DNA of 64,000 bases from Dimorphilus gyrociliatus (lineage: Eukaryota > Animalia > Annelida), in contig CAJFCJ010000013.1 of the NCBI GenBank assembly GCA_904063045.1, positions 912,156 through 976,155 of the forward strand. The letters run 5' to 3'. The notes under the pieces are model-generated. The model was not told where the DNA came from. It saw only the letters and a list, made by a program, of their open reading frames with translations, and made no database searches. A program made the translations under genes and the position numbers. Of this stretch, positions 26,003-47,500 are shown one piece after another. Every line of letters begins with the position of its first letter. Position 1 is the first letter of the stretch.

Positions 26003-29000
26003 ATGCCATCACCCTATCAAATTTTATTTGAAATTAGCAAGTACTAAGAATAATTATTGCAAAACTAATACGTCTGCCCTCTCTATAGAAAGAAAAATAA
26101 AAGTATTGAAGAGTTTTCTGCTAAATTTTTGTCATTTTTCAATAAAATACAGGTTATATTTATCGATAGAGAACTCGTAGTAATTTCTTCTAAAAGGCAA
26201 CTTAAACAATGGCGAATATCTCACCCAACAAGGCGACACTACATAAAAGGGACATTATCAGTAAAGAATGCTATCCTTACGATAGGTTCCCAATTCATTG
26301 TTTCCTTAAAAGATCCAAATTCGTTCGTATAGTTTATATATTTTAACATTATTTTCAATATTTCATTGTTATACTTCGTTCTAAGAACCATTTAACTTCG
26401 AAGTCTATACTCCATCTAGAAATGGAAAATTTAAGTTTTATGAATGATTTTGTTATGTATGCTCTTTCAAACTGTAGTGGAGAAGGGGTAAATATCTTTA
26501 TAATATTATTTCTTTCTTTCAATCAATCAATCACTCATTTCGAATTTCTACAGTTTGAATTTTATTTATCATCATCTTCATTTAACGGCTATAGATTCAC
26601 CGATTGGTTAATTTATTGGCTATCTAGACATTTGTCGAAGAAGAGTATGGTTTGTTTACTTCTATTTAAAATAAAACCATTATTTTGATATACATGGGGG
26701 ATTGCTTATAGAATCATACGAAAATATCCAATATACCTATAACGTCTGGAGGAATATTCAACCTCAATACAACTGAACTTGTTTGTGAATGATTAAGAAT
26801 TTATCGCTGGAATATTAACAACATTATTTTTTTAAAGCAATTTCCTGCATCTTCTTGCTTTTCAATTCCCGAAAAATGTTTCAATTTTATCAATACTCTT
26901 AAATCTCTTAATCCCTATATTGATAGGTGTCTATTAAAAGAAGAAAATTGCAGAAATGAGTCAATTGGTTGGCAATTTATTCCCATAAGATGTTTATATA
27001 ATTGTTATTTTTTGAAATTTATAGCGTCACTTGAAAATTATAATAAACATATTTTGGATACTACTAAAATGGTTATTGTACATTTTGAGAAATTGTACCC
27101 TGAATCGCAGACAAAATGTCATCCATTTAAAAGGATGAGTTTCATTGACATTTTAACAGATAATTATCACGTTTCGACATCATCTCCAATGAAATTTTTG
27201 AAATGCGATTCGTATTTCTTATACGAATGCTTTGAAGTGAGTTCATCCTTTTTATCAATACTATAAAACGTCTCTATTAATCCTTATTGTTCCTTTCTAT
27301 AGGAATTCTATCCACTATTCTACTGTGAGAAATCGGTAGCAATAGTTCCTTGCACTACTTTAGAAGGAAATCAAAGTGTACTAGCCAGTCATTTCTGTGA
27401 TATCGCTATCTCATTTATTTTAAACGTAAGCGCTTTTACCTTTAAAAAAGAATTAATTAGCGTCTAATTGATTATTTAAAAAACAAAAGGTCTTAAAACC
27501 GTTAAATGTCCATGGAATTCTCTTCGTATGCATAGGAAAGGAAGATAAAACTTTAATAAGCAGTTTCAATAGTTATCTATTGAAAAAGAAGAATGATTTA
27601 GCAAATTTGATTGGTGAACAAATGAAGTTTGTCTCTATCTTATATATATATATATATATATTAATTATACAAAAATTATATTCTGATTAAATGTTAAAAG
27701 AGTAGAAGTTCTTGAAAAATTGGACCAAGCTGGACAAAATAGAGTGCATCATCTAGTTGCTCTCCACGAAATATTATCATTGTGCATTGAGAAGAAAAGT
27801 ATTGATATATTATTCCTTCAAGATGTTAACAGATCGGTATTTACAATAATAATCATTGGTATATATCGGTTTAAAAAGATTATATATATAATAGGCTATA
27901 TATAAATCTGCTGACAAACTCCACAAAATAATTATATCAAATTGCGAGTGGCTAAAGGTGTGTATGACCTACTTAAAAGTGATAATAATTAAAAAAACAA
28001 CCGAAATTTTGTTCATAGTACGGTAGTCCAGCTATTAATGAATTTAAAAAAAGTATTAGTAGTATGAAGAATGTACTAGCACATCCTTCAGAAATTGTTA
28101 CAAACATTCCTCCGAGTATTATGAGTTCTGGTAACGTCTGAATATATTTTTGTATTTCTTCACTCAAGTGAAAATAATTCAATTTCTTTTTATCTTAGCT
28201 GCCAAAAATCTGACCCCTTACCTGGTGAACGATGATACGAGAAAGAAGCACAAATCCCTTTTGGAAAGTTTAGAAGAATCGTATTCCGAAGATATATTTG
28301 TAAAGATTGTTTAATAATATTTAAATGATAATTTTTTAATATGGACTTTTATCATTTGCAGTCGGAAAAGGCAACAAGTAGATATTCTAATATTGTACAA
28401 TCGTTGATGCGTTTTCCCTATTCGACTGCACTGGAATTTCTACATATTACAGTAAACTTTTGTGCTTAAAAAAAAAATAGAAGCCCTTTGTAAATTGCTA
28501 AAAATTTTCAGGGAGATATAATAAGTTATAGAGAGGTTCTAAGAGAAACTAAAAGATATGTCACAAAGCCATCAAAATTGATTAATAAAATGAATGAGAT
28601 GGGAGAAAACCTGACAAAAGCTGATGAAATTTGTGACTATTATTTGCCTTTTCTAGATAAAGGAACATCGTATTACGATTCCGGCCATCTTATAGCATCA
28701 GAATTAAAATGCTGTCCAGTTGTAAGATTCATATTTGAATTTTTATTTTGCAATTTCCATATGCAAATTTAATTCTTCTGTACAGGATCTCCAAGAAATG
28801 GGATTGGGACTAAGGATAGTAAAGCAGACTTTCATTTTACCTCATTGCCTAAATCGTTATACGAATAGAGAAGTACGAGCAATACTTATAAAAGGAGAAA
28901 ATCTACGAGATCATAAATAACTTAGGTTTATCAACAGTTACAATCGCCTAACTCAGATCAAGCCTCCATTGCGTACAAGTTTGTGCATGGAATTGATAAC

Positions 29001-32000
29001 TCCCTCTCATGGCGAATTATTCAAATGTTCTTTCTAGTATATTATCATGCAAAGTCGTACTTTGTTGCGAAATTATATTGCAATTTAATTATTATTCAAT
29101 GCGGAACTTCAGAGTTATCCGTCCACGTAGAAAGTTAGTATAAAAAAACAAAGTTGTAAAAGAAAAATGACTGATATAAATACTAATTATTCCATTACTA
29201 TAGATAATGAAATAATTATAATTTGTTCCACTGTAAGAACTGATGATAGTCATCTCTATTTGGCCAATTTTCTAGTAGAAGCTTGCTCTATTGCAGAGTA
29301 TATTTTACATCTTGGGAAAGTCTATTATCAAGTTATTATTATCATATATTCATAGATATATATTTTTTATTATATATTGAAAAAAATCACATATAAATCT
29401 GTCAATTTTTTTACCTTTCTTTAATCAAGAAAGAAGAAATTCACGAATGGAATGGAAAAGATGACAAACAAAAGTTTAATGAATTCAGTAAAAGATAATT
29501 GATAAATTATTTTCTCTCTTTATCTCTTTTCTTTCTTCATATCCTAATACTATTTTTTTTTTATAAAAAAGGAAATAACTTTGTTATTAGATTGGAACAT
29601 GAGTTTATTGACGTTGAGAAGCAAAGTAATCTATTTAAAAAGAGAATGATTTGGGTAATTTAATCTTTTTATTAAAAAAAAATAATTAACAATCTTGTGT
29701 TTTTTTTAATAAAAAAAAAACAAAGCTTTTTCACAAAACTGTAAATCCAACTTCCTTCGAAGAGGTTCCATTTTGCGAAGATGTACCTGAAAATAGAAAT
29801 GAAAGAAAATTATCTAAATGCCGTACCAATACTACTGAGTTTAATAGAAAAAACCAATTATTATACTGGAAAATGAATGTTACAAACTTTAACCGAATCG
29901 AAATACCAGCAAACTGCGATATATTAATAGCGTATAAACAAAATTAAATTTTGCTATTGTTTATCAATCTAATTAATCTTATTTTTTTATAGGTCACAAA
30001 AGTATGTAACTATGTCTTTATGTCTTTCCTTTTATATTTACTATTTTATAAAATTATTATCTAAAAAGAATGGATCCTACTACTATAGCAGTAAAAGAGA
30101 AAAAGAAGAAGACTATAGATGATAATACAAATATTCATTATTTAGAATTGAGCATAAAAGACACTGTAGTACCGATTGTTTTAAGATCTGAATCAAGAAT
30201 TATGATAAAAATGAAGGAAATAGGATATTGTACATCGGTAAGTAGGGGAAATGAATTTTTCTGTAAAACAAAATAATGCAACTCTAATATCCTATATGTA
30301 CATTTGTTGAAAGGAAAAAACTGTTTCAAGATTACTTATTTATGCTGATGAAGTACTCATTCATAGAGATATCATACCAGTAACTGATTACAACGTGAAA
30401 ATTACTCCAAAAGAAGATTATCCGACTATTAACTTGGATTTTGCACCTGTACATTTTATTCTTGATACATTATATCTTTTCTTTCCTCATTTTTCTTTTC
30501 ATTTAATTAATTTACTCATTTTTCCTTCGATTTGCCTCCCTTCTAAGACTATCGAATACGATAAAGGATCCTTACTTAAGGTTGGCATGAAATTTGAGGG
30601 CTGGGACGTAGAGACTCGTCAGACACGTGTCGCTTCTATAGGTTTAATTGTTCGAATTGTTTTAATAGAGTTTTATAATTACCAATTTATCATATTGTAG
30701 CGGCTATTGACCCATTCGAAAATCAGATTTTAGTTCACTTTGACAGAATGCATGATTACAGTTTCTGGATTGATGCATCGGAATCGATACATATCTATCC
30801 CGTTGGTTGGACTGAAGAGAATGAAGATAAAAAAACAAATTCTAATAGACTACAACCTCCCCAAGATTATGACTCTTCAACATTTAATTGGACAGATTAC
30901 CTGGAGTATCTTAATAAAACTGCAATACCAAAAGCTTGGTTTGATAAGGTAATATATAATTTGTATATAAAATTTACAATAAAGAAAACTTTACTTACCA
31001 AAAGCGAGACAATAATTCAAAAGATATTTGTCCAGCAATCATCAATTTTCCAAAAGAATTCGACTATAAAATAATGAACGACGGTAGATTTTATCACCTT
31101 AATTAGCTAACTAATCAACTAACTAGAACATATTTTTCTACAGCACTCTTTACAAGCGCTTGTAAACTGATATTGGAGAATACAAGAAAACTTAGTGGAA
31201 TAATGAAAACTCCGACTGGATCCCGTCAATGGATCCTAAATACAAATGTGCCTTTAACGAGAACAAAATGCTTTCGATTGAAAGATATAGAAGAGTCGAA
31301 GATTAATTTTGCGTACTTACTTTGCGAAGGAAGTAGACCAGCCGATATGCATATATTTACTAACTTGGAAAGAGAAATTAAAGATATATCGGAAGAGAAT
31401 ATGCTCTTATTTAAAAAGTTTACGATATGCCAATTAGCAAGGATATTACAAAATGTTAAAGATCAAAGAAAAGCGAGAAATTATTCAAAAATAGCATCTT
31501 TATATTTTTATTTTTGCTATTTGGTTAAGACGCATCAATTAGACGACATTGCCGAATTTGGAAAGACTTCTAAAACAACTAAAAGTCTTTGTAAATTTAT
31601 TGATAAATATTTCGAACAGTCGGAATATTTTAAAGATAGGAATGGAAAATCTTCTATAGCATGTTCATATCATAAAAAGAGATCGCAAGCTCGTGATGAA
31701 GGTAGTTTTTGCGAACAAATAGTTTCCTCGCTAATTGAAGTGTTAGACACCATAAACTCCAGCAACGTTAAATTGTTTTTAAGCTGGCCCGATAGGTTTG
31801 ATTGTCTTGTTATATATTATATAAACTATATAATAGTCTATATTACAGAATTAATGGAATATCCAGTATTGATGTAGATGGGATAGAAGATATACCGAAA
31901 CATTTAGGATATATATATAAATGTATGTTCTTGACGAATTTAACAATAGAAAATTGTGGAATTAAGGAAATAGGAGACGAAATTATTCACCTTTCGAATA

Positions 32001-35000
32001 CATTAGAGACAATATCACTTTCTGGGAATCCTATTGTGAAAATGTCTGATAATTTTTACAAATTACGCGGTCTTCAACGGATAAATGTGTCTAATACGAA
32101 AATAACGAATCTTTCTAGGCAGTTTCTTGAATTCAATGCCTTACGAGATCTTAACGTTTCTGATAATTATTTGGACGAGTTTCCCAGCTTTCTAAGCAAA
32201 CTGACATCTTTAATACACTTAAACGTATCCGGTAAAGAGATATATCCTTTTCGAGAGAAGCAGGCTTTAACGAAAAAGGATTTTGAAAATTATTTATTGA
32301 GCTTAAATGAACATTGCGTTAATATTCCCAATGTTAGACGTGTCTTTGAAGAGAAGATAATAAATAAAGAATACATAGAAGGAGAACAAATTGAAGAACT
32401 TCACGCCCAAATATTTAAGGAAATGCCTCATATTAGAAAATTTCCAGAGATTGACGACAACAGCTTTCAACGATTAGAAACGCTATTGTTAATGAATCAG
32501 AATTTGTTATCTATAGATCCGTCTATTGTTAAGATAAGTCGGCTAAAGCGTATAGACCTTAGCAATAATCCATGTTTGGAGGAAGTACCAGCTATTAGCA
32601 CTAACGAATTAAGATCAATATCATTAAAAGGCTGCGGTTCTTTGAAAACTCCTCCAAAGGAAATAGTAGCTAAGGGGCATTTTGCTGTTTTAGGATACCT
32701 TAAACGACTCTCTAAAGGTTCAGTAGTTTGTCGAAGAACTAAACTAATGTTAGTGGGTCTAGGAGGAGCTGGAAAGACCAGTTTGATGAAATCACTTATT
32801 TCCGAACAACCCACCAAAACACCTCCTGACGTTACTGACGGTATTGATATCGTTAATTGGGATGTAGGATCGTTAGTCTATTCTCTTTGGGATTTTGCTG
32901 GTCAAACTGTTTATTATAACACACATCAATACTTTTTATCAAATAGAGCCATATATATCCTAGCGTGGAATGTTCGCCTGGGACACGAACACTCCGGTTT
33001 AAAGTTCTGGCTTAGTTCTATTGAATGCCATGCTCCAAAGACACCGGTTTTAGTTGTTGGAACTCATATCGACGAAGTAAGAAACATTTTAAGATATTCT
33101 TTAAAAGTTTAAATTCGAACCTTTATAGATATATACTGTATATATATATATTAATACATTCCTATTTTTCAAGGTTGAAAAATCAGAATTACCGGAAATC
33201 GAACTACAAAGACGTTATACTCAGATTAAAGGATTTTATTACGTATCGTCGTTAACTAATATTGGAATTGATGAACTACGAAACGATTTAATTCAAATAA
33301 CATTGAAACAAAAATATATGGACGAAAAGATACCAAAGATATGGTTAGACTTTGAGGAGATCCTACTAAAGTAGATTTTCTAATACTGTATTCCTATTAG
33401 TGGTGTTAAGCTAATAATTGTTATTTAGATACAGAAATTCCAATTGTAACGTGCTAGAATTTTCAACGATTGCTAAAGTAGCAGAAGAGAAATGCCATAT
33501 CAGCCGAAGTGAACTAGTACAATGTATTGAATTTTTACACGAATTGGGAGCAATACAATACTTCAATAACGAATTCCTAAAGAATAGAATTGTAGTTAAT
33601 CCCCAATGGATTGTTGATGTAATGGCTTGTGTTGTTTCTGTTAAATTAAGCCCCATTGTTGATGGTAAATTCTATCATAAAGATATACGGTCAATTTGGA
33701 AAGATGACCAATTTCCAGAAGATATGCTCAGCTGGTTGTTAAAATTAACTGAAGAATTTGATTTAACATTTTGCCTTAAGCAGGATAAAGCTAACCTGGT
33801 ACCTTGTTTACTACCTGAAAGAGAACCGGAAGTAAGTAAATTCCATTTGAAATATTATATATACATTCACTGATATCATCTTTTTCTTATAGTTTGAATG
33901 GAAAAATCTGATTGAATCGGACGATGAAATCGAAATGAAAATGATATATAAGTTTGATTATCTACCATCCGGTCTATTTAATAGAGCCCAAGTAAGACTA
34001 CATCAATTCTGCGATGAGTCGCTTATATGGAGAAAAGGAATGTTATTGAATAAGAATATACATAGAGCTTTAATGAAACAATTAAAGTAAGCATCAAATT
34101 ACTCTTCCAACTCTCTTTAGAAACTTAATGCTGCGCATAAATTCTCTAGCGATACTACTGTTCTCGTTCGAGCTCAAGGATTAAAGCCCGACAATGTTCT
34201 ATTTTTAGTTCATGAAGTTTTTGAAACGTTAATTGCAGAATCATTTAGCGGTGTGAGATACGATTATAGCATACCTTGTCCAGAGTGTCTTCGATACGTA
34301 ATTAATTTCTCTTGTTATTGTTTAAAACTAAATACTTTAATACTAATCCTTCGCTGTTTAATAGTTTAGTGCCGATCCTTCAATGATACCGGGTCAAAGG
34401 ATTCGAAAAGCAATTGCTCTTAAAGTACCATTTCTGCAATGCGTTGAAAATTTCCATACTATGTCGATAACTCAACTAAGATCTGCTCTACCTCCTGAAA
34501 ATTCGGAAGATTTCGATATTCAACTGCAAAAAAGCGTTAATGAATTGCGTAATATCAAATCAAACCTTTGTTTGAGTATTATCATTATGTACTCGGAATC
34601 GGATTTACCAAAATCCGGCTTAGAATATACAGTAGTCGGTTTACCTATGTTACAGAGAGACCTGAAAAATAAAGGATACGATACGTATGTTAATCAAAAC
34701 AATTTTTTATTATAGAGTGTATAAATCTATTTATCTATTTAAAATAGTAAAACAATTAATGATATGGATAATCTGTCTATGGAAGAGATGATTAGTACTA
34801 TAAAGGAGTCTCAGGTTTAAAAAAAATTTGTAGTTTATAAAATAGAACACGAGAACGCTAATTAAAGAAAAATGTTCCATTTTTTGCAGATTGTTTTGGT
34901 ACTAATTAGCGATGCTTTCGTAAAAAATCAAACAACAAAAAATTTATTCATATACATTAAAAAATTTCTTAATAAGAGAACTCAGTTAATTCTTACTAAT

Positions 35001-36711
35001 GATGATAAAGAATGGAAAAGCGACTTCGAAGTCGGACCTCTTTGCGCCGATGATGTTTTTATATCGATGAATAGTATTGATAAATATCAGCTTAGATTTC
35101 AAGATTTAATCGATAATATTTCAAAACATGAAACTTTGAGTCGTGTTAGTATTCTCTCTTTTCCACCTTTTTATTCCGCTATTAAAATAATTCTTCTCTT
35201 TTATAGACTGATTGGCCACCCTGTTTTATTAGCTATTGTTGGTCTAATTCTTTATCAGCAATCGCTAAGGGAACAAAATCCACCGACAAGAGTAAAGGAC
35301 TAGTTGATCCTAGAGACTTAAAAGATGTTCTTGAAAAGAATGATATTAAATGTTGGATGGACGTTGAGCAAGTTGGTCAATCGGGTTTATTTCAAGATAT
35401 TGCAGAAGGTTTAAAACACGCTCGAGTGGTTGTTGTATGCGTATCCGACGAGGTATGATTACAATTATTTTGTCAGCAGATATATATAAATTATGCTGTA
35501 TATTGTATCTAGTACGTTAACTCCCGAAACTGCCAAATGGAATTTCGTTTTGCCGCTATTACATTAAGACTACCAATTATTTTCGCTGTAGTAGGTACCG
35601 GTCAGGATTGGGTTCGCTCAGAAGTTTGTATTAACCTTGTTGATTACCTTATTATATATATGATATAAAATATAATTCAATCATTTAGATTGGAATGATA
35701 TCGTTAAATCATTCAAGAGTTAATCTACAATCACCTAATTATGATTTGAACGATGTTGCTGAGCTAGTTAAACCACATTTAGACAATTTTGACGATATTA
35801 AGAATAAAGAAATTGCTCTAAAAGAGAAAATTGATCAAAGAGCTTACAAAGAGATATTAGAATTGGCTCAAAGGAAATTATTGCGTCAAGTTATTGGTTT
35901 AGCTAATAAAATCAACGTTGGCTATTTACCTCATTTACCAATTTTAGATTTTGAATGCGATCAAGATTCTAAGATAAAAAACTATCAATTTGTCTTTCTT
36001 TGTGAACACGAAGAAGGTTGGCATATTCCTAATGAAAAAGCTTCGAAACAATGGGACATGAGTCCTGGTACATCGGATGAAAATGAAAACTTAAAGCTAT
36101 GGTCTCCCTATTTAGCTAGAATCTTTGCCATTCTAAAGTTCACATCCATTGAACTCTCGATACTAAAATTCAGTATTGGTCAAGAAATTGTTAACGGGTT
36201 AATTGAAAAATCAGTTCAAGCAGAAGATATTAGCGATTCCAGTTTCGAAAAGGCCTACACGCAAATTATGAATTCTCTAAACGAACTGGTAGACATATTC
36301 CTGAATGAGGATAGCTGTTTAGCTAGATGCTATACAGGCAGTGGAAAAATACTTTGGCTTTGTAAAGAACATCAGAATCTTCCAAGAATAACTAAATTAG
36401 AACTAGAAGAAGGGGACAAAGGACGGGCGTTAAATTCCGTAGAATCCGATAGAGATCAGAGATTTGCTGATCGAGTTAAAATGGCTAACAAAGTAGGTGC
36501 AGAGAAGAGCGTACAGTTGAGAGGAAAATTTATAGGTGCTCAAGTGGCCGCTGATTCTGCTGTCAAGTTAAATAAGATGAAAGAAGCTGATGTAGCTAAA
36601 AATATTGAAAAATCAGATTCAACAATTGATATAGCTGAAACTGCTAAAACTGTTATTGGACAATCTATAGCAAAAGAAAAACAAACCAGTAGAGCCTGCG
36701 TTATCACTTGA
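26003..36711 (+). CDS. Giant ROCO protein A: degenerate Roc-COR, MBT, LRR, Roc, COR, pseudo-TIR, TIR, CaaX; multi-exon
   Basis: LRRs (31.85-32.65 kb); Roc KLMLVGLGGAGKTSL, WDFAGQ, VGTHID; COR EFLHELGAIQYF...VNPQWIVDVM and YKFDYLPSGLFNRAQVRL; TIR CFISYCWSN...CQMEFRFA; MBT LKVGMKFEGWD...LVHFD...FW...YPVGW...FNWTDYL; ends RACVIT*. The MBT-to-LRR join is inferred via a 56-nt intron (30949-31004) and a short exon 31005-31083. The start at 26003 is tentative. Confidence 0.8.
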
Positions 36712-37201
36712 TACGAGAGTATAAATTACAAAGAAAATAATCTATTACAAATTTTTTTAAATCGCTGGTAGACTAATATTTCACGGTCGAATATTTTTGA
36801 TGTTTTGCTACAGTTTTTACAATAACTGTTCATTTAATCCTGCTGTAAACTTTATATTACCGGCCTTTCTTCACAGTCCATAAAGAGAATTAATTAAAGG
36901 TATACGTAAACTTCACAGTCCCTTGAATAATTTTTAATAGTAGAGAAGACAATACTAATTAATTGTCATTAGCTACATATTTTTTCCATCAGTAAACAAA
37001 CCTGCCATTGTAATGACATCTATCTCCTTTCAGTTTTATCGTGTATTACAAAAAAAACTAACCTTTTTCAAAATTATCATTCTATTTAAAAAATGAAAAA
37101 TAGGAATATAGATGGCGTTCAATATTTCATTGAGTACAAATAAGATTTTTTAGTACTAATTAATTAATTTAATGTCAAATTTTCAACACTCAATTGGGAC
37201 A

Positions 37202-37284
37202 GGTGGATTAGTCCAGTGCTCATAGCTCCTGTCCGCACTCTCGCGGCATTTAAAGCCCGGGATCGAAGCTGGTTAAATCCAGCG
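37202..37284 (+). ncRNA. Degenerate tRNA-like element A (tRNA-Glu-like); Pol III-type pseudogene, SINE head or ncRNA
   Basis: GC-rich island. Terminal helix GGTGGAT/ATCCAGC (6 of 7 pairs); A-box-like TAGTCCAGTG at tRNA position 8; CTCTC and GCCCGGGATCGAA resemble tRNA-Glu(CTC) GCCCGGGTTCGAT. Cloverleaf imperfect. Confidence 0.4.
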
Positions 37285-38920
37285 AAAATAATTAAAATAT
37301 AACAGTTTGCACAAAATTATCTCCAAGGCCAAACCGTCTTGGAAGAGCTTGTAAATAATAACAAAATGCAAAAGGAAACGTTAAATGTTGTACATAGAAA
37401 AAATTGTAAATAAAGGCACACAAAAAGTACCTAAAGAGAACAAATGTAAATATTGTAAATAAGGGTTGAATAAACCCATTTTGCTAAAATATTCACCTTA
37501 ATTTTTCATCTTATAAATAATTTGGTTATTGTTTTATTCCTAACATATACAATACATATACTGTATATATACTATATGTATACGTTCTTTTCGTGACGTC
37601 ATAACATTACGCCTTACAATTTTTTTCATTCTTTTCAAAAAATTTTAAAAAACTGATACTAATATTATGTTTAATTCTCGGTTTATTTAAGCATAAAAAA
37701 GCTTTTTTTTTTGCTGTAAACTACTTTTAGATACTTTTTAATTAGTCTAGAAAAAAAGGTAGACTGACGCCATCTGGTATTTGAATTATTGACACACCCA
37801 ACCCCCCTTCCCAACAGTACATAGTTGTTCCAGTCCACGTAAAATCTCGTCTTTTAACGTGCATGGAACTGTTGTTAAAACATGTGACGTTATTTAGGCA
37901 AAAATGACGGTAAAGCATTTATTCTATCTATGAAATAAGTATTGATAAGTTACCTAGTTTTTAGATGCATGTTTAAAATTTCTTACAGCTTCTGAGTTAT
38001 CTGCATTTTAGTTTTTATTACAAAAAGGAATTCCTATGTATAATAAACTTTTTCGTCAGTCAGGAAATTGGGGAATTTTCTTCCACTAAAAGCAAACGTC
38101 AAGAATATAATAAAAACCTACAATTTACTTTACAAGAGTAATAATATAGTTCGGAAGAGGAAGAGTGGAGCAGAACAAAATGGAGTACTTTTTTTTGCCG
38201 CCAAATTGTTGACAACAACCAACTGCTACAAAATTTAAATAAGCCCTACATATGAACTCGAATTTGGCCTGATAAGTCAAAAAATAATTCATCTCAATAA
38301 CAAATTTTCAAAAGATTATCTATGCAATTTTTTCAGAAAAAGAAAAAAGGGACAATTCAGGAAAGCTACGCATTTTTTGCAACATAAAGTCAGAAGTCAA
38401 CATGAAAAAGAGAAGAAGAGTTAGGAGGACAGTAAATTCAAATTCGATTAAGATGAATATCAATTAAGAGAATATCAAGTCAAAAATGATTTATGCATTT
38501 TGTCTTAAATTTATTTTTTAAAAGTTTTTTCTATAAAAAATTTTTTTTATTTTTTTTTATTTTTCCTTTTTCAATTATGTTTTTTATTATTCTTTCTATT
38601 TTTATTTTTAATATTTTTATTTTTCGATTTTTTTATATTTTACTTATATTTTCTTTTATCGTTTATCGTTCATGCAATATCAATATATATATATATTTAA
38701 TTAACGTTTATCATATTCCGTGCTTTGAACATGTTTTTCTAATAATTGTTTACATTCACATTTACAGTACACTTAACATTTAATGAGTATCAGTTAATGA
38801 CAATTGTAGTTTCTTTCGTGTCTATCTTTACCCAGAATTAATCCAATGTTTTGTAAACTCGTCCCTTTTGCCCAATACAATCTGATTACTTCCAAAGTTT
38901 TTTTAACGTCCATTTTTACC

Positions 38921-38986
38921 AACTGGCGGGTTTCGAACCCGTTACCATAGATGGTGCGGCCGGGAGCTCCTAACGCTATGCCAGTC
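38921..38986 (-). ncRNA. Degenerate tRNA-like element B with A box and B box
   Basis: Minus strand GACTGGCATAGCGTTAGGAGCT...CGGGTTCGAAACCCGCCAGTT. A-box TGGCATAGCG and T-arm CGGG-TTCGAAA-CCCG lie at canonical T8-to-T54 spacing (46 nt); terminal helix GACTGG(C)/(G)CCAGTT; no proper anticodon stem. Confidence 0.5.
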
Positions 38987-39067
38987 CTCAACGGCCCAAA
39001 TAACAGTTCTTAAAACTTGCTATTGAAACGCACTTTTAACAAAACTAACTATACATCAAATACTACA

Positions 39068-39250
39068 TGGCGCCATCTGTGATGTAACAATTTGATAAGA
39101 TTTCGGAAGATTTTAGTACAAGAAGTAACCCAATCAATAACAAAATCATCTTACATTGGAGAGAATAGGGAATTTCTCTTTCTCTGTCCAATTATATTAA
39201 ATTTGGAGATTCTTTCGCAAATTTTCAATATAGAACTTTAGATGGCGCCA
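39068..39250. promoter_or_regulatory. Inverted pair TGGCGCCATCT (39068-39078) / AGATGGCGCCA (39240-39250), YY1-like motif, between divergent elements B and C
   Basis: Perfect 11-bp reverse complements. The core resembles the YY1 consensus CGCCATNTT/AAGATGGCG and recurs in intergenic DNA elsewhere in the window. Confidence 0.45.
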
Positions 39251-39331
39251 AGTGCTTTTTTTTGTGTTAGAAACTAATTAGACTCAAGGTAAATCTGAGT
39301 TTTAGTAACACACTTTCGGGGTCGCCGGCTT

Positions 39332-39447
39332 GGGCGCATACGAGGAAGCCAAGGCGATTGTACCCTCGCATCCGTTCGGTAAGATACTGTTCAGGGTTCG
39401 AACACACTTAGCGCCCCAACAAACTTCTTTTTTTTTTTTTTTTTTTT
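39332..39447 (+). ncRNA. Degenerate tRNA-Leu/Ser-like element C followed by an oligo-T (Pol III terminator-like) run
   Basis: Terminal helix GGGCGC/GCGCCC; CGAG..AAGGCG resembles the type II tRNA D-arm CCGAGCGGTCTAAGGCG; GGGTTCGAACAC is B-box-like; T20 run at 39428-39447; T-stem does not pair. Confidence 0.45.
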
Positions 39448-39960
39448 CTTTTATATTCTTATTTCAATTTATCTGCGTCTCCTTGATTTATTTTGTTTTT
39501 ATATTTATTTTATTATTATTACTATTATCGGTATTATTATGATTTTGAATAAAACACGAAACCCAACTATTTTTCAAGTACAAAATAGAAAATTTTATAA
39601 TTCAAAGCGGTAATTTAATTTGTGATATTAAAAATTAAATCTCTTTAAGAAGATTAAGATGATGTTTTCTTGAAATAATATTTAAGATCAACTAGACAGC
39701 GCCCTCTATAAACGAAGCATTACGCAAAGACATCACTTCCGTTCCTAGAAGCAAGATAGAAAACATTCGAAAAAAAGAATAAATCTTAAAGGTGATAGAG
39801 TTTGGCTTTTTTCTTTGTTTTTCTCTTCTCAACTTTGATTAAAACTCATAAAAAACGTATTAAGTATACATTGAAATTCTTAGTAACTACTCAACAGATT
39901 GACTGCTATAAAAAGGAGAAAGCGAAAATTTTCATTATTCGCCATATTGAACTTGGAACA

Positions 39961-40443
39961 ATGAATACCAAAAGGAAAATAATAGTTTTAGACCCTGTTC
40001 TTGAGGTGCAAGAAGATGAAAAACAGCCAACTTCTTCGACTAGTTCAAAGTCGGATTCCGGGTCCGGCTCTCCGGCTAGTATGACCAGCCCTTACGAAAA
40101 TAAAGCAACTCCAACCAGGCCGCCTACACTTTCAACGTCAAAAAAACGTAAATTATCCAATAATTTGAAGAGCAGCTTAAAGCGTCTGAGAGAAACGGTT
40201 GGAAAGTATCCAAAACGTATAACTTGGGAAGAAGAGCCAAAAAGTCACTTTTCGCAGTCGGCTAGAAAAAACGTTACGTTTGACCCTTATCTGGACGAAC
40301 CTGTAGTAGAACGAAAATCAAAAGGAGATTCTAATACTGATAAGAAGAAGACTATAAGTCTCAACATTATGCAGAATCTGGAGCCGAGCAAACACGAAAG
40401 ATACATTGATTATTTGGATGAAGATGAGTCTTGGCCGTTCTAG
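39961..40443 (+). CDS. Intronless orphan, about 160 aa, disordered Ser/Lys-rich protein with RVxF-like motifs
   Basis: ATG at 39961 in ORF 39802..40443; more GC-rich than its flanks; KKRKLS (NLS-like), KRITW, RKNVTF; no recognisable domain. Confidence 0.6.
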   Translation: MNTKRKIIVLDPVLEVQEDEKQPTSSTSSKSDSGSGSPASMTSPYENKATPTRPPTLSTSKKRKLSNNLKSSLKRLRETVGKYPKRITWEEEPKSHFSQSARKNVTFDPYLDEPVVERKSKGDSNTDKKKTISLNIMQNLEPSKHERYIDYLDEDESWPF

Positions 40444-41513
40444 GTAACTGTCTATGTTTGATTATGTTATTATTAAAGTCTATAGTTTATTAGTTGTCTA
40501 TCTTATTGAATTTAAATTCTCATTTATTCCTTTATCATTTATTTTTATATCTAAGTTTTGTTATTTTTTGAATGTTTTATATTATTTCAATTATGATTGT
40601 AAAAGTGTATATTATATATACATGTGCTATATTTTATTATCATATTAATATTCAATAGTATAATCGTGATAGGATCCTGTTTTTTTATAAAAATAAATTT
40701 ATTTATCCTTTATCAAAATAGGTGTAAATTGCGGGCTCTTTCAAGGATGTTGATTTTTTTTTTACACCAAAGGCTGATCCGTGTCTTCTTTATCTTATAT
40801 TTTTAGAAGTTCTATTCCATCTTATGATTTTTAGTTCTTTTTTAGCTATATTCTTAAAAGAACTTACGCCAATCAACCGGCTAGTCTAGATACTTTAAAC
40901 TACTCTCTATCTAACAGGTTGATATGCTTTTCTATTAGTTTATCTTTGTTTGTTCCAAAAACATTTTTCTTTTTACTTCATCATCTGATTTACTTCAAGG
41001 TCTGTAACATCATTTTCTCTCCTTGAATAAGTTCTTATAGTTTTCATTAAGAATGGCATGCTAGATTTTAGGAACGTTTATCCTAACATCATATTATCGT
41101 CCTTAAAATTAATTCCATAAACGAATGTTTCGCTTCGAATATTAAATGGTTTTTAAACAAGAAATCCACTTACGTTGAATACATTTCGCTTAAATTCTTA
41201 AAGAGGATAACAAATAGCTCAGGTATTAAAGACCCATAAGATTATTGTAATCTGACTAGATATCTTATTGAATAATATTAGTATAATCATACTAATTATA
41301 ATATGTATCTTTTTGTATTTCAAAGAAATTCATAACAATAAAATTTGTGTCATTAAAGAAATAAACACTAATTAGAGTGCCTTATTCTCTAAGTATTGCA
41401 AGTATTGTAGATATTTCTATGTGATGGTTGTTTGTCGTATCCATGCAATCATTTGTGATTACATTAAAAGAGTAATTTGTATGAGTTATTTATTGATGGT
41501 AAACTAGACAGAA

Positions 41514-44500
41514 TTACATTATTAGGCATGCCCGACTTTTCGTCTTTCGATTACCGGACAAAAGCTCCTGAACCATCATCTTCTTAGGAGTTTCGATGGA
41601 TTGATTAGAATCAGTATTCCCTCTTGATTCCAATTTCTTTTCGTTTCTTTTCTCTAAATAGTTGGCGCCTTCAACTGCTATTTCGGCTCCTTTAAATTTT
41701 CCACGGATTTCAACGCTTTTTCTCCTATCTTTTATTTTATCTAGTATACCAATTGAAAATTGTTCATCTTTTGTCTGAATGGGAGTTTGTTCTTGAATAA
41801 CTTCTTTGTTATCTATCAAATTTACACGTAGTTGTTTCTGATGTATATTACAAAGCCAGGCTAATTTTCCATTAGTCATTTGACATTTAGAAAGAGGTTC
41901 AACCGCAGTTCTTTTAGGCTGATTTTTTGCCTCCATATTATTTATAGACGTTAATAACGAATTATAGCAGCTCTCAACGTCCAGCTCTTTATTCTCTTCG
42001 AATACGGATTTGGCGTAATTCAACGCTTTACCAACCATAGCGTCTCCCTCTTGCGTATTGAGAATGAGTAGAGGAATTGCTGTTTGTTTCAATATTAAAT
42101 ACAATTTGGCAAGGTAACCACACCATTTTCTAAACGTATCATCAACTTCGTTACTTTGCCAGTCGATAACCCATTCAATTTTATTGTTTTCCGGTGGAAT
42201 GTGCCATCCCTAAATAGGTAAATGAAACGATATTAGGCGGAGATTATCCAATGATAGAAATAAGCTTACCTCATCGTATTCGCACAAGAAAAAGAAACAA
42301 TATCCCACTATGTCATTGTCCTTTGAGTCGTTTGAATTCCTTTTTAAAAAGTCAATTACTGGTAGACGAGGTAGTTTTCCCTGACAGAAGACTTTGTCAA
42401 AAGAGGATAAATATCTAACAAACTTCCTTTCAGTCAGTTCTAATAGTTCACTAAATTCTTTCTTTTTTGATATAGTGTTATTGGATGATGATTTCTTTGG
42501 TTTATCTTCTTTGTTCTCTATGTAACCCTTAATCAATTCAATTATCTTTTTAGTATCTTCTTCCAAAGAAATCATATCGAATTTAGGATAATCTAATCCA
42601 AGCATCCCGACTTCAGATTTAATCCATCCCAAACCACTTCCAACAATAACGATAATAACTGGTAAACGTAAAGTTAGAGCTGCAAAACGAAATTCCATAA
42701 TGCAGTTTTTCGATGTGACGTACTCTTCCGATACGCATGCAATCACAACTTTAGCCATTTTGAGACCTTCCGCAATATCCTGATAAAGACCAGCTTGACC
42801 AACTTGTTCAATATCCATCCAACATCTAATTCCGGCTTCTTCGAGTTTTGTTTTTAAATCCCTGGGATCAATCCTGCCAAGAGCGGATTCTATCAATTTC
42901 GTTCCTTTTTTTACAGCCTGTCTAGAGTTGCTCCACGAGTAGCTGATGAAACAATGAGGTTGAGCCTGCCTTTTTTCGCAATCGTATTCTTTACAAATAG
43001 ATTTCCTCAAATCTTTCATTTTTGTATCAAAATTCTTAAACTCTTTCATATTAACATAAACCTGAAAATACAAGAAGAGATCGTAAAAAATTGATTCAAG
43101 TCGATAAAAATAACAACAGCATCAGAGCACAAAATTCCAATATCGGGATCCTTTTTCCAATTTTCATTGTTATCAATTAAGACTAATCGTATCTTAGCAT
43201 CAAATTGTTTCTTTGCGTAAAGGAAAAGCTGTTTACAAGTTTCATTACAGACAAATTTATGAGTCATGAAAACCATAATAGTATCCGATTGTTTTAACGA
43301 CATAATCGTCTCTTCAACTTGATTTTCTGATTCTTCGTTGTAGCTCGATCTTTGAAGATTAAATTAAAGGATGATAAGAAAGTCATTTAAAAAAAATTTT
43401 ACGTACACAGACACTTCGGTATCTTCCAAATTTTCTTGTATCATCTCCGGAGTTACAATATCTCCAGATTCGGCAGTAGTTTTATAATCTTCCAAACAAT
43501 AAAGAATAGCAAGATTATTTTTAATAGATGATTTCATCTTTTTAAGATCTCTTAATGAGCTTTGTAGTTGAGAGTCAAAATCTTCATTATTTTCTGGAGG
43601 TAACATATCTAGAGGGAAAGATAATTCAACAGGATTAAATGATAATTTCATTTATCAGCTATTTTAATAATTTTACTTTGTAGTTGATTTAAGGATAAGG
43701 TATGAAAATTATCATAACATTGCATAAATGGTATCTTGAAATCTAAGGCTCTTCGAATTCTCGTAGACGGTAGCATAGATGGTTCGGATAATCCGTGACG
43801 TACGCATTCACTACAAGGAACGTGATAATCGTATTTTACTCCGACAAAAGATTCTGCAATTAGGTTTTCGAATACTTCGTGAACCATAAACAAAATATTC
43901 TCTGGTCGTGGTCCTCGAACTTCAACCAAAACCGTTGATTTGCTATAATCGATAGTTGTAAATATTTTACATCATTTCTATTCATTAAAATGTCGATTAT
44001 ATTGTTACAAACTCTGTTTTTTTAATAAATCCTCTATGGATATTTTTCCTTAGAAGAGAGCCGTCTTTCCATAGTTTCAATTCATCACTGTATTGATGGA
44101 GCCTTACTTGAGCTCTATTAAAAAGTCCGGATGGAAGATAATCGAAATTGTAAATCATTTTCGTTTGAACTTCTTGTTCGCCCAAGGTATCTCCTTCCCA
44201 GAAAGTCTTTATAAGCAAATAAGTCCATTTATATAGTATATATAAAAAAAAAACTATAAATGGCCTACTTCAGTATCAATTGATGGAAGGAGACAAGGAA
44301 TTAAATTAGCCGATCCTGATTTTAAGGGAAATGATAAATCAAATTCTTCCGTTAATCTAATAAGCCAATAGTGCAGTTCGGATGGATAAATATTGGTAGG
44401 CCATACTTTATTTAGGTCACAATGCAACAGTTTTCCATTCTTCAAACGTAAAATTCATAATTAAATAGTCATTATCGAAAAGGAAATTCTCTAATAGACC

Positions 44501-47500
44501 TACTTTTACGGCATTATCATGAACGGAAATGACGCAAGCCATCACATCGACAATCCATTGAGGATTGATGACTACTTTATCCTTTAGAAATTCATTTTCA
44601 AAATGTTGTAGGGTTCCCAACTCGTGTAACAAACGAATCGCTTGAAACGTCTTAATTAAATCGAAGAAAGAGAGAGAGAGAGAGAGAGAGAGATAGAGGG
44701 AAATAGATGATAAATTAATAATTTGGAATTACTAACTAGTTGGAATTTACCTCAAATTTATCATTAAATCCAAACATTGCCCCAAAACCAATAACTTCTT
44801 CCAACGAGAGAAGACTGGTAAAGACTCTGTATCTATTATAAAAGATAACGAAATGGCAAAAGATTACATATGAATTTTTCAATTCAAAATCCAATTTACT
44901 CAATGATTTTATTCTCAAAATCCAACCAAATTTTAGGTATCTTTTCATTCATGTATTGCTGTTGTAGTGTAACTTCAACCATATTATCAACAAGTGTATT
45001 CACACCCTTTAGTAAAGGTTATATATATATATATATTGTATATACTTGTAAAGATGGTACAATAAATCTACATACTTGACCTGTTTTTGATGAAACGTAA
45101 TGGAATCCTTTGATTTGAGGATATCGTCTTTGAAGATGATGGATAGTTAATTCAGCTTTCTCAACCTAAGAGAGAATTGTTTTATTGTAAAATACGGCGG
45201 AGTGGATAAAATTAAAAATGAACTATACTTCGTCTATATGAGAGCCCACAACAAAAATTGGAGCTTTCGGAGCATGACATTCAATAGAACTTAACCAAAA
45301 TTCAAGACCAGCGTGCTCATGGCCTAGCCGACAATTCCATAGGAGAAAATAAACAGCTCTATTCGAAAGGAAAAATTGATGGGTGTTATAATAAACTGTT
45401 TGTCCGGCAAAATCCCAAATTGAATATTCAACTGATTGAACAAGCCACTTCTTTATTGTAATTCCATCAGTAACTGTTGTATTTATAGTATCATGACGAT
45501 CGTCATCAGATTTCTCTTTCATCATTCTATTGATAAGGCTGGTTTTCCCCGCACCTCCCAAACCTACCAACATTAATTTTGTTCTTCTACATTGAGTTGA
45601 ACCTTGTAATAGTCTTCTCATATAACCCTGAATAAATTTTAGACCTTTTACTACAATTTCTCTTGGAGGTGTTTTTAGTGCAGGGCAATTCTTCAATCGC
45701 AAGATTTCTATTGGAAGATGGCAAATTTCGGCGCTAACCTCCTCAAGAACAAAATTATTGGATAGATCTAAGATTTTCAAGGAAACCAAATATTTAATAC
45801 TGCTGTCCAAGACTTGAAAACTTTGATATTGCAATTCCAAAACAGTTAAGCTTTGACAAATCGTATTGTCTTTACACATATTAAATTTTAAATTTGAAAT
45901 TCTGGGTAATTTAGAATATAATCCAGAGCAAAACAGCTCCATCTCTTCCGTTGTCCATGAGTTACTATTCTGTAAAGCGGTTTCTTTAATCAATTCCTCC
46001 AAAGCATTATTATCCAAATTGAACTTGTTAAGATGCTTCCAATGTTGATGTGCTAATTGTCTAACATCATCCGTCAAGATTGATTTATTGATTCTATCCG
46101 GCATATAACCAAAAGCGTTAAATTTGAGTGTAATCAGATTTGATAGACGAAAGATGACCAATGGAAATATACTAAAAACGTTATATGATATAATTAAGAC
46201 CTCTAAATTATTTAGTTCAGCCAATTCGTCGGGCAGAGAATTTATAGGTAGGGAAGATAAATTTAAATATGTTAATCGCTTAAATGCACAAATTATCATT
46301 GGAAATGCTTTTAAAGCAGAGCACTCTGTCACTTCTAAGTGTGAAATTGTTGGTGCTAATGAAATTAGCTCTTGTGGTATATCTTCTATATCGATACCAT
46401 GCAATTTTAACGCTGTTATTGAGCTATTAACAAACGTAGTTAACTCTTCCTTTGGTATATCCACAACTTTCTGATTTAAAGAATGATGAAAATTACAAAT
46501 TATCTTTCGTTCACCTATCTTTATGTATTTTCGTTCGTTTGAGAAATAGGAAAAGCATTTTCTCCATTTTTCACTTGGGGATTCTTCAGACTTATCAATT
46601 TTCTTTGTTGTAGATAAACATTTTATAATCAAAAATGAAAAATAGAATAATAGCTGAGCCATTTCACAAGTACAATCTCTCTATTTGGACGAGGAGAATA
46701 TTTTGATAAAATACGCATCAATTATTTTATCTAATATTACGAAACTTACCATTTCATGATCTTCAAACTTCCAATTAGAAAACACTATAAACGATAAATT
46801 TTCCATTTGGGGACTATATTCTTGAGTCTGACCTGCACTTTTAATGATATGCTTGGTACGATGATTATTGTCCTCTGATTCGTAGCAGAAGGCATACGGT
46901 ATTAGCGTTTTACTTTTTATTATATCCGATAGAAAGGGTAAACATGTATCTCTCAGTTCATTCCTCATTAGAAAACCAATTGGATATTGAGCTACTGTTA
47001 TTAAATCTTTAATACTTCGAGAAAGACGCCCCTTTTTCTCAATGAAGTCTGTTTATGGAGTAAAAAAACAAATAGAGATTCAAATGAGCATAATCTATTT
47101 ATTTACCAACCCCTAGCTAGATTTTTATTTTCTGAATAAGGTTGCGCAACCAACTCGGTAAATCGTTTGTTTATATCCGGTTCACTTAATTTCTTAATAA
47201 CTTCTTTAGGAATTTGTTCGAACGCCATACACTTGATGAACTCTTCCCAATCAAGTTCTCTATCAGTAGTATCTTTTTGTTATAAATAAAAATCAATACG
47301 GCATTTCATTTTGATGAAAGATTAATAATAATAATAAATTGTATACCTATAAAGATATTTTTGCAGTATTCTTTTAATATCAGCAACGACAGTGATTTTA
47401 AATCTACCCATTTGAATTGTTCTTTAAGCCAACAATGGCTTATTTTAAGCTCTTTTTTATCATAACAGATATCACCTATAAAAATTAAATAAGATAGAAA

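Follow-up and report, generated by a model that had tools for sequence, protein, structure and literature searches.

We analysed a 64,000-nucleotide stretch of the genome of the annelid Dimorphilus gyrociliatus (assembly GCA_904063045.1, contig CAJFCJ010000013.1, positions 912,156 to 976,155 of the forward strand), referred to here as the window. The G+C content of the window is about 31%, and its reading frames are interrupted by short GT..AG introns. Two intron-bearing genes, A on the + strand (ending at 36711) and B on the - strand (ending at 41514), are convergent, lying tail to tail with an intergenic gap of 4.8 kb between their 3' ends. Both encode large proteins of the ROCO type with the order (MBT)-LRR-Roc-COR-A-COR-B-TIR1-TIR2-helix-Cys/His core-helix-disordered tail-CaaX, where LRR stands for leucine-rich repeat. 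The second TIR domain (TIR2) carries a glutamate at the position that is catalytic in NAD+-cleaving TIR enzymes (NADases), and the first (TIR1) carries a leucine there. Judged from sequence, an NADase function of A and B is plausible, although unproven.

Spliced models of A and B were built from GT..AG sites, from the LRRs or the MBT region onward, and cross-checked by aligning the two paralogues. In these drafts the two proteins share 44% identity between the LRRs and the C-terminus and can be aligned over the whole span. No further copies of the family besides A and B were found in the window, and ARAGORN found no tRNA genes between them at 36700-41520.

A first annotation made from the letters of this stretch, referred to here as the original prediction, had described A and B as ROCO paralogues that end in a TIR domain. 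The ROCO and TIR assignments were borne out by Pfam, with LRR, Roc, COR-A, COR-B and TIR_2 all scoring above their cutoffs and Roc followed at once by COR. The COR-A scan was run on A and the COR-B scan on B, and the counterpart copy was assigned by alignment. In A, an MBT repeat (32.3 bits, cutoff 22) is followed by LRRs at ~31898-32566 (LRR_8, 59.6 bits), Roc at ~32741-33073 (72.8 bits), COR-A at 33429-33831 (88.3 bits) and COR-B at 33893-34086, 34150-34297 and the start of 34365-34684, the last assigned by alignment to B and relatives. In B, LRRs are found at ~46296-45715 (LRR_14, 41.7 bits; LRR_8, 31.7 bits), Roc at ~45579-45232 (86.3 bits) and COR-B at 45.8 bits. The nucleotide-binding motifs of Roc are intact, with G1 GLGGAGKT and G3 DFAGQ in both proteins and G4 THID in A and SHID in B. 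TIR_2 (PF13676) matches B with 50.5 bits (E 3.5e-13, cutoff 28), and the first half-exon of A reaches 29.1 bits by itself. The domain also has a flavodoxin-like fold, and a chance match of the TIR motif is excluded.

Other parts of the original prediction need revision. Neither protein ends in a TIR domain: beyond TIR2, both continue for ~330 residues, up to a CaaX box. A single TIR per protein had been implied. The Glu-bearing TIR is present, but it is the second of two modules, and the first has Leu. The proposal that Roc-COR stands in place of a STAND ATPase agrees with the Pfam scan, in which Roc and COR score above cutoffs and neither A nor B has an NB-ARC or NACHT match. The sole STAND-like match, to nSTAND6 on the Roc P-loop, is sub-threshold (E 0.024). 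A and B are best described as NLR-like by analogy and lie outside the TIR-NLR/STAND class. The analogy with TIR-NLRs drawn in the original prediction is a concept that has been published before.

A and B also differ from Toll-like receptors (TLRs). A Roc-COR GTPase lies between the LRRs and the TIRs, and no transmembrane helix was seen in the modelled parts of A and B using 19-residue hydrophobicity windows. The most hydrophobic of these windows include charged residues and fall within the folds of the TIR and the LRRs. A CaaX box is found at the C-terminus of each protein, CVIT in A (36697-36708, stop 36709-36711) and CLIM in B (41528-41517, stop 41516-41514). The same kind of Cys-x-x-x ending is seen in relatives from four phyla, namely annelid, mollusc, brachiopod and amphioxus. 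The CaaX box points to a cytosolic, lipid-anchored protein. From the architecture we infer that the LRRs and the MBT repeat act in sensing and the GTPase in switching.

The region following TIR2 contains a conserved Cys/His domain. In A it is encoded by the last exon, where a long helix of ~55 residues (residues 20-75 of the exon) precedes a conserved core (residues 84-246, ~35938-36426, +). The equivalent in B lies at 42374-42270 and 42209-~41800 (-). Cys105, Glu106, Trp111, His112 and Cys225 in the core are invariant in the family alignment and His228 is nearly so, and the motifs LCExExGWH and WLCxxH are characteristic. These residues may coordinate a metal or act as a catalytic Cys/His pair. 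The AlphaFold2 model of the region has a predicted local distance difference test (pLDDT) score of 79.6. The domain has no match in Pfam and no Foldseek match in the PDB, and its Atlas feature scores are all <0.9. A VIA wide structure search of the C-terminal domain returned mainly coiled coils matching helix 248-307 and was set aside. A weak lead comes from an Atlas shape match to a cyanobacterial Roc-COR cluster, with a template-modelling (TM) score of 0.45 over 195 residues.

Putative catalytic residues of TIR2

TIR2 of A is encoded by 35207-35452, 35513-35623 and the start of the last exon (35689-~35790), as indicated by Pfam TIR_2 and RNA joints. TIR2 of B occupies 42974-42510 within an uninterrupted exon (42270-43061, -) that also holds the start of the C-terminal domain. 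Their key motifs are CFISYCWSNS...CWMDVEQ...SRNCQMEFRFA in A and CFISYSWSNS...CWMDIEQ...SKNCIMEFRFA in B. The Ser codon of strand β-A is located at 35231-35233 in A (+) and at 42944-42942 in B (-). The last motif contains the Glu, whose codon (GAA) is at 35540-35542 (+) in A and 42693-42695 (-) in B, where it reads TTC on the + strand. Both Glu motifs and their codons are present as originally written, as are the FISYxW and WMD motifs said to precede them, in the forms FISYCW or FISYSW and CWMD.

We aligned 63 homologous TIRs of the family and searched solved structures with a profile built from this alignment. The Glu (E94) is invariant in 63/63 sequences. S11, Y12, N16, S17, D36, P37, R38, W52, D54, S82, Y85 and S88 are also invariant, and all family-invariant residues are present in both A and B. 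The best match among solved TIRs is the bacterial NADase Cat1 (E 4.6e-9), followed by RPP1, TLR6, TLR1 and Roq1. In every printed alignment, E94 is paired with the Glu of the C-x-x-E helix. A single-sequence phmmer search of the B TIR against the PDB, which returned spurious matches to RecA repeats and a marginal match to Cat1, was superseded by the 63-sequence profile. In the AlphaFold model of B TIR2 (pLDDT 88.6), the Glu lies in helix 89-101 and the BB-loop region is uncertain.

Independent structural evidence is available for a paralogue, A0A7I8VYT1. In a 2026 preprint, structural alignment to ThsB places GLU 1833 of this protein at the catalytic position, and its other TIR has LEU there (10.64898/2026.04.20.719644). 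Our check of the sequence puts residue 1833 at the Glu of CQMEFRFA. The call of the catalytic position in A and B rests on the Cat1, RPP1 and Roq1 alignments, on range offsets and on this published call, which together uphold the original prediction on this point. The comparison with SARM1 E642 that it had proposed as a check is less clear: the Glu was aligned in Cat1, RPP1 and Roq1, but SARM1 matches the family profile only over positions 40-82 and weakly (E ~0.5).

A second residue of the putative active site can be proposed. In SARM1, Ser567 is 2.6 Å from the Glu and is reported to be needed for NADase activity (10.1101/2025.04.09.647920). The shared F-I-S-Y motif and the structural range offset indicate that S11, the Ser of this motif in β-A, probably corresponds to Ser567. 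Foldseek ranked SARM1 first for the TIR2 model. This ranking was rejected as evidence for an enzyme-type TIR, as re-ranking with VIA-align left SARM1 tied with MyD88 and the Hydra Toll-related receptor (TRR-2), so that enzymatic and scaffold TIRs rank equally.

Several observations weigh against an NADase. The same Glu is found in TLR1 and TLR6 in the profile alignment. TLR2 keeps it and is inactive in the assay of the preprint, which its authors explain by a Glu pointing away from the pocket (10.64898/2026.04.20.719644). The residue four positions before the Glu (E-4) is Asn in the A/B family, but Trp in SARM1 (D-W-V-H-K-E) and in the aligned plant TIRs (S-W-C-L-D-E). The fourth observation comes from an assay. 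TIRs of the A/B family were catalogued in the preprint, and two were tested as isolated domains in E. coli, residues 1746-1890 of A0A7I8VYT1 (Table S4, row 137) and a TIR from a 2,825-residue Rotaria protein (row 136). The 'Active' and product cells of both rows are empty, meaning that no cyclic ADP-ribose (cADPR), 2'cADPR, 3'cADPR or NAD+ depletion is recorded (10.64898/2026.04.20.719644). The A0A7I8VYT1 TIR is 61-62% identical to those of A and B.

These points have to be read with others from the same source. Asn at E-4 is also found in a Latimeria TIR (S-R-N-C-K-K-E) that depleted NAD+. The RUN1, RPS4 and RPP1 controls are likewise blank in the table. The authors stress that the assay used isolated domains and followed three products only, and Roc and COR are named in the Figure 3 legend as architectures of TIR proteins that were active (10.64898/2026.04.20.719644). 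A Glu at this position is necessary for NADase activity, but it is neither diagnostic nor sufficient, because it is also present in TLR1, TLR6 and the inactive TLR2.

Relatives and the tandem TIR pair

An exhaustive profile-free search with the TIR exon of B as the query identified 1,022 relatives at E <= 0.001. The long relatives have the same (MBT)-LRR-Roc-COR-A-COR-B-TIR(-TIR) architecture and occur in Dimorphilus gyrociliatus, Branchiostoma, Lingula, Haliotis, Pecten and Argopecten. A and B are old paralogues in a family of giant ROCO proteins that is conserved among metazoans. Two D. gyrociliatus proteins encoded at different loci, DgyrCDS9496 (CAD5120946, UniProt A0A7I8VYT1) and DgyrCDS14676 (CAD5126586), are paralogues of A and B. 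Their identity to A and B is 44-49% over the part that starts with the LRRs and 61-62% in TIR2. Both share the TIR1(Leu)-TIR2(Glu)-C-terminal domain order, and DgyrCDS9496 ends in a CaaX box (CLLL) like A and B, whereas the N-terminal regions of the two are divergent from those of A and B.

The two TIRs of the tandem differ consistently. TIR1 of A, which starts in the COR-B part of the gene and continues at 34748-34814 and 34890-35144 (+, seen in the RNA contig), is degenerate and has Leu at the catalytic position (KNLFIYI). TIR1 of B, predicted at 43608-43407 and 43349-43115 (-), is also degenerate, with Leu in CKQLFLYA. In each of the 25 long members examined, this position of the upstream TIR is occupied by L, I, M, F, A or S. 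Among 107 relatives with two TIRs, 57 have a non-Glu followed by a Glu, 32 have Glu in both and ~1 has the reverse order; Glu is essentially never lost from the second TIR. The strongest case for a role of the TIR2 Glu comes from this polarity from TIR1 to TIR2 combined with the invariant polar residues. The polarity also suggests that the tandem pair is the functional unit, in which case the published lack of activity of isolated TIR2 is what one would expect.

A separate invertebrate family with Death-TIR-TIR architecture (870-1,480 residues) shares the TIR type of A and B. Many of the Glu-Glu tandems may belong to it.

The architecture itself has been described before. An actiniarian sea-anemone protein, 'Novel Gene 1' (2016), has the order LRR-Roc/Ras-COR-TIR_2, and a Trichoplax variant with MBT and bacterial Roc-TIR_2 fusions were noted in that report (PMC5094078). 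Aplysia MBT-LRR-ROC-COR-TIR proteins were filed under 'TLRs' in 2022 (PMC9334734). The TLR label for these relatives is unlikely to be correct, because they would be cytosolic GTPases with a CaaX box. These proteins, all invertebrate-only, share with A and B the LRR-Roc-COR-TIR_2 order and in some cases MBT, and architecture was the sole basis for proposing them as immune genes (PMC5094078, PMC9334734). The accessible portions of the two accounts make no mention of a dead-plus-Glu TIR pair, the Cys/His domain, the CaaX box or catalytic residues (PMC5094078, PMC9334734).

More distant systems show parts of the same plan. Bacterial conflict proteins of the type LRR-AP-GTPase(Roc)-COR-effector have a variable effector slot that can hold TIR, and have been compared to NLRs (Kaur et al., eLife 2021, PMC8195603). 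They share with A and B the LRRs at the N-terminus, the Roc-COR switch and a C-terminal slot for an effector, which may be a TIR. Unlike A and B they are prokaryotic, and MBT, a tandem TIR, the Cys/His domain and CaaX form no part of the account in the accessible text (PMC8195603). Compared to SARM1/TIR-1, AbTir, Cat1 and the plant TNL TIRs, A and B are without SAM or ARM domains and without a STAND ATPase. Their TIR2 also differs from NAD+-cleaving TIRs in having Asn for Trp at E-4 and a longer stretch after β-A, and NADase activity of A and B remains putative. An LRR-Roc-COR core like that of A and B is present in human MFHAS1, LRRK1/2 and DAPK1, and an amphioxus member of the family has been named 'MFHAS1' automatically. 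These human ROCO proteins are not known to carry a TIR domain. LRRK1/2 and DAPK1 have a kinase output, and MFHAS1 has none.

The architecture and the idea of an NLR analogue are already published, and A and B are further members of a catalogued invertebrate family to which they add little. The ordered pair of a dead and a live TIR, the Cys/His domain and the CaaX box shared across phyla are not discussed in the accessible portions of the literature compared here.

Possible functions of A and B

The most likely single reading is that A and B are prenyl-anchored ROCO switches in which the state of Roc-COR controls assembly of the tandem TIRs and TIR2 processes NAD+; we give its enzymatic step only about an even chance of being correct. 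In such a mechanism, the protein would be cytosolic and tethered to the membrane by its prenylated C-terminus. Roc-COR would act as a nucleotide-dependent switch of dimerization or conformation, as in other ROCO proteins, and the N-terminal LRR and MBT parts would provide input or autoinhibition. Activation would bring the tandem TIRs into an ordered assembly, where TIR2 would consume NAD+ or convert it to an ADP-ribose (ADPR)-type signal. Enzymatic TIR signaling by animal proteins other than SARM1 is under active study, and a deeply conserved, membrane-anchored GTPase with a Glu-TIR would be a natural place to seek a regulated NAD+-derived signal outside STAND receptors.

Alternatively, the TIRs could be non-enzymatic scaffolds. 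A GTP-switched, membrane-anchored ROCO protein would then nucleate TIR-TIR assemblies that recruit TIR adaptors, and the Glu would have a structural or interface role. We regard this as somewhat unlikely. Possible adaptors exist, as the genome and the relatives hold many Death-TIR and TPR-TIR proteins, and Death-TIR-TIR relatives are among the sequence matches. MyD88, IL-1RAcP and Hydra TRR-2 are among the best structural matches, and the same Glu in TLR1, TLR6 and the inactive TLR2 is consistent with a scaffold. The strict invariance of polar residues from annelid to amphioxus, including the Ser-Glu pair, is more typical of a ligand-binding or catalytic pocket than of an interface, and the degenerate TIR1 loses exactly the Glu that TIR2 never loses. 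The empty rows for two family TIRs in the screen would fit a scaffold; the same screen is negative for RUN1, RPS4 and RPP1 and was limited to isolated domains and three products (10.64898/2026.04.20.719644).

The tandem arrangement allows a more specific version of the NAD+-processing mechanism, which we consider tentative and quite unlikely. The dead TIR1 and the Glu-bearing TIR2 could constitute a built-in asymmetric dimer, a composite NADase site on one chain that is gated by the nucleotide state of Roc-COR at the prenyl-anchored membrane. TIR1 would play the partner that opens the active site of its neighbor, as in SARM1 and plant resistosomes. The inactivity of TIR2 alone in the published screen would thereby be explained. 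The tandem TIRs and the dimerization of COR are suggestive, but no more, of the self-association by which a composite active site would be built. If this is true, the family would be a GTPase-driven animal counterpart of TIR-NLR resistosomes, with the Cys/His domain as a further module.

More doubtful still is the possibility that TIR2 is an enzyme whose substrate or product is outside those assayed. Candidates are low-rate linear ADPR, pRib-AMP/ADP, di-ADPR, ADPr-ATP, N7-cADPR, NADP+-derived products and 2',3'-cyclic nucleotide monophosphates (2',3'-cNMP) derived from nucleic acids. The invariant N16, S17, D36, P37 and R38 fall in the longer, family-specific stretch from β-A to helix A, a part of the profile left uncovered by the matches to solved TIRs, which begin at ~position 38-40. 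Plant TIRs have been reported as 2',3'-cAMP/cGMP synthetases in a preprint. These unmeasured products are named as a limitation by the authors of the screen, but NAD+ depletion was not recorded for the two family members either (10.64898/2026.04.20.719644).

Decay of one or both duplicates, leaving the motif as a relic, is very improbable: gene B is a predicted model and A and B have diverged to only 44% identity, but both frames are open through every predicted exon to the CaaX box, both copies keep all family-invariant TIR residues, and the transcription and precise splicing of gene A bring this explanation close to refuted for A.

Useful outputs of the analysis are the RNA-verified exons of gene A, the family-wide rule that the dead TIR comes first and the Glu-TIR second, the conserved Cys/His domain, the CaaX box, and the recognition that the single published assay was run on TIR2 by itself. 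Together they favour constructs with both TIRs, or longer ones, over isolated domains for future tests.

Exon structure of A and B

Contigs of the public run X1 have introns removed, and the run therefore derives from RNA. A spliced X1 contig of 9,008 nucleotides matches gene A over 31143-36999 with zero mismatches and 12 GT..AG joints. Gene A is transcribed and precisely spliced. Both introns within its TIR2, 35453-35512 and 35624-35688, are absent from the contig. The MBT-repeat exon (30701-30948) belongs to the transcript that carries the ROCO-TIR part, as indicated by a loose contig end at 31002 whose sequence is that of the exon's end, followed by GT..AG joints. The LRR-Roc exon (31849-33076, with RNA joints) is followed by a region that encodes the end of Roc, COR-A, COR-B and the start of TIR1 (33174-34684), all joints of which are seen in RNA. 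A micro-exon of 67 nucleotides at 34748-34814 (+) lies inside the degenerate TIR1 and is visible only through the RNA contig. The equivalent residues in gene B appear to be within one longer predicted exon, 43349-43115. The last exon of A (35689-36711) encodes the end of TIR2, the helix, the Cys/His core, the second helix, the tail, the CaaX box and the stop.

The RNA contig extends ~3.4 kb further 5' of the matched part, so protein A is much longer than the 1,722 residues modelled. The greater length is consistent with relatives of 2,100-3,300 residues. At the other end, the contig continues 428 nucleotides past 36999, to ~37427 (+). The 3' untranslated region of gene A is therefore at least ~700 nucleotides long and reaches into the convergent intergenic region.

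The exons of gene B were predicted from GT..AG sites and alignment to its paralogue. The LRR-Roc exon occupies 45229-46680 (-). The end of Roc, COR-A and COR-B are encoded within 43677-45165 (-), where splicing is predicted to join 45165-45076, 45006-44900, 44832-44751, 44650-44504, 44439-44269, 44206-44013 and 43942-43677. The last exon (41514-42209, -) contains the Cys/His core from GWH onward, the tail, the CaaX box and the stop.

The similarity between A and B continues beyond the ROCO core. Matching exon fragments are found upstream to ~26.8 kb on the side of A and to ~51.2 kb on the side of B, and fragments are collinear in both arms when 26793-36711 (+) is compared with 52290-41514 (-). 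Paired fragments of A and B include ...MRFPYSTALEFL and ...YRFPYFKAVQFL, and ...IVIVHFEKLY and ...IVIVHFRSMY. The upstream paralogy reflects either very long N-terminal regions of both genes or an inverted duplication of a multi-gene block.

The summed contig depth of X1 rises to ~975 at 33000-33199, compared to ~90 elsewhere, and several X1 contigs break into unrelated sequence around 33147-33159. The site falls in an AT-rich intron (33077-33173), and the jump is therefore probably due to low-complexity or repeated sequence drawing in unrelated contigs.

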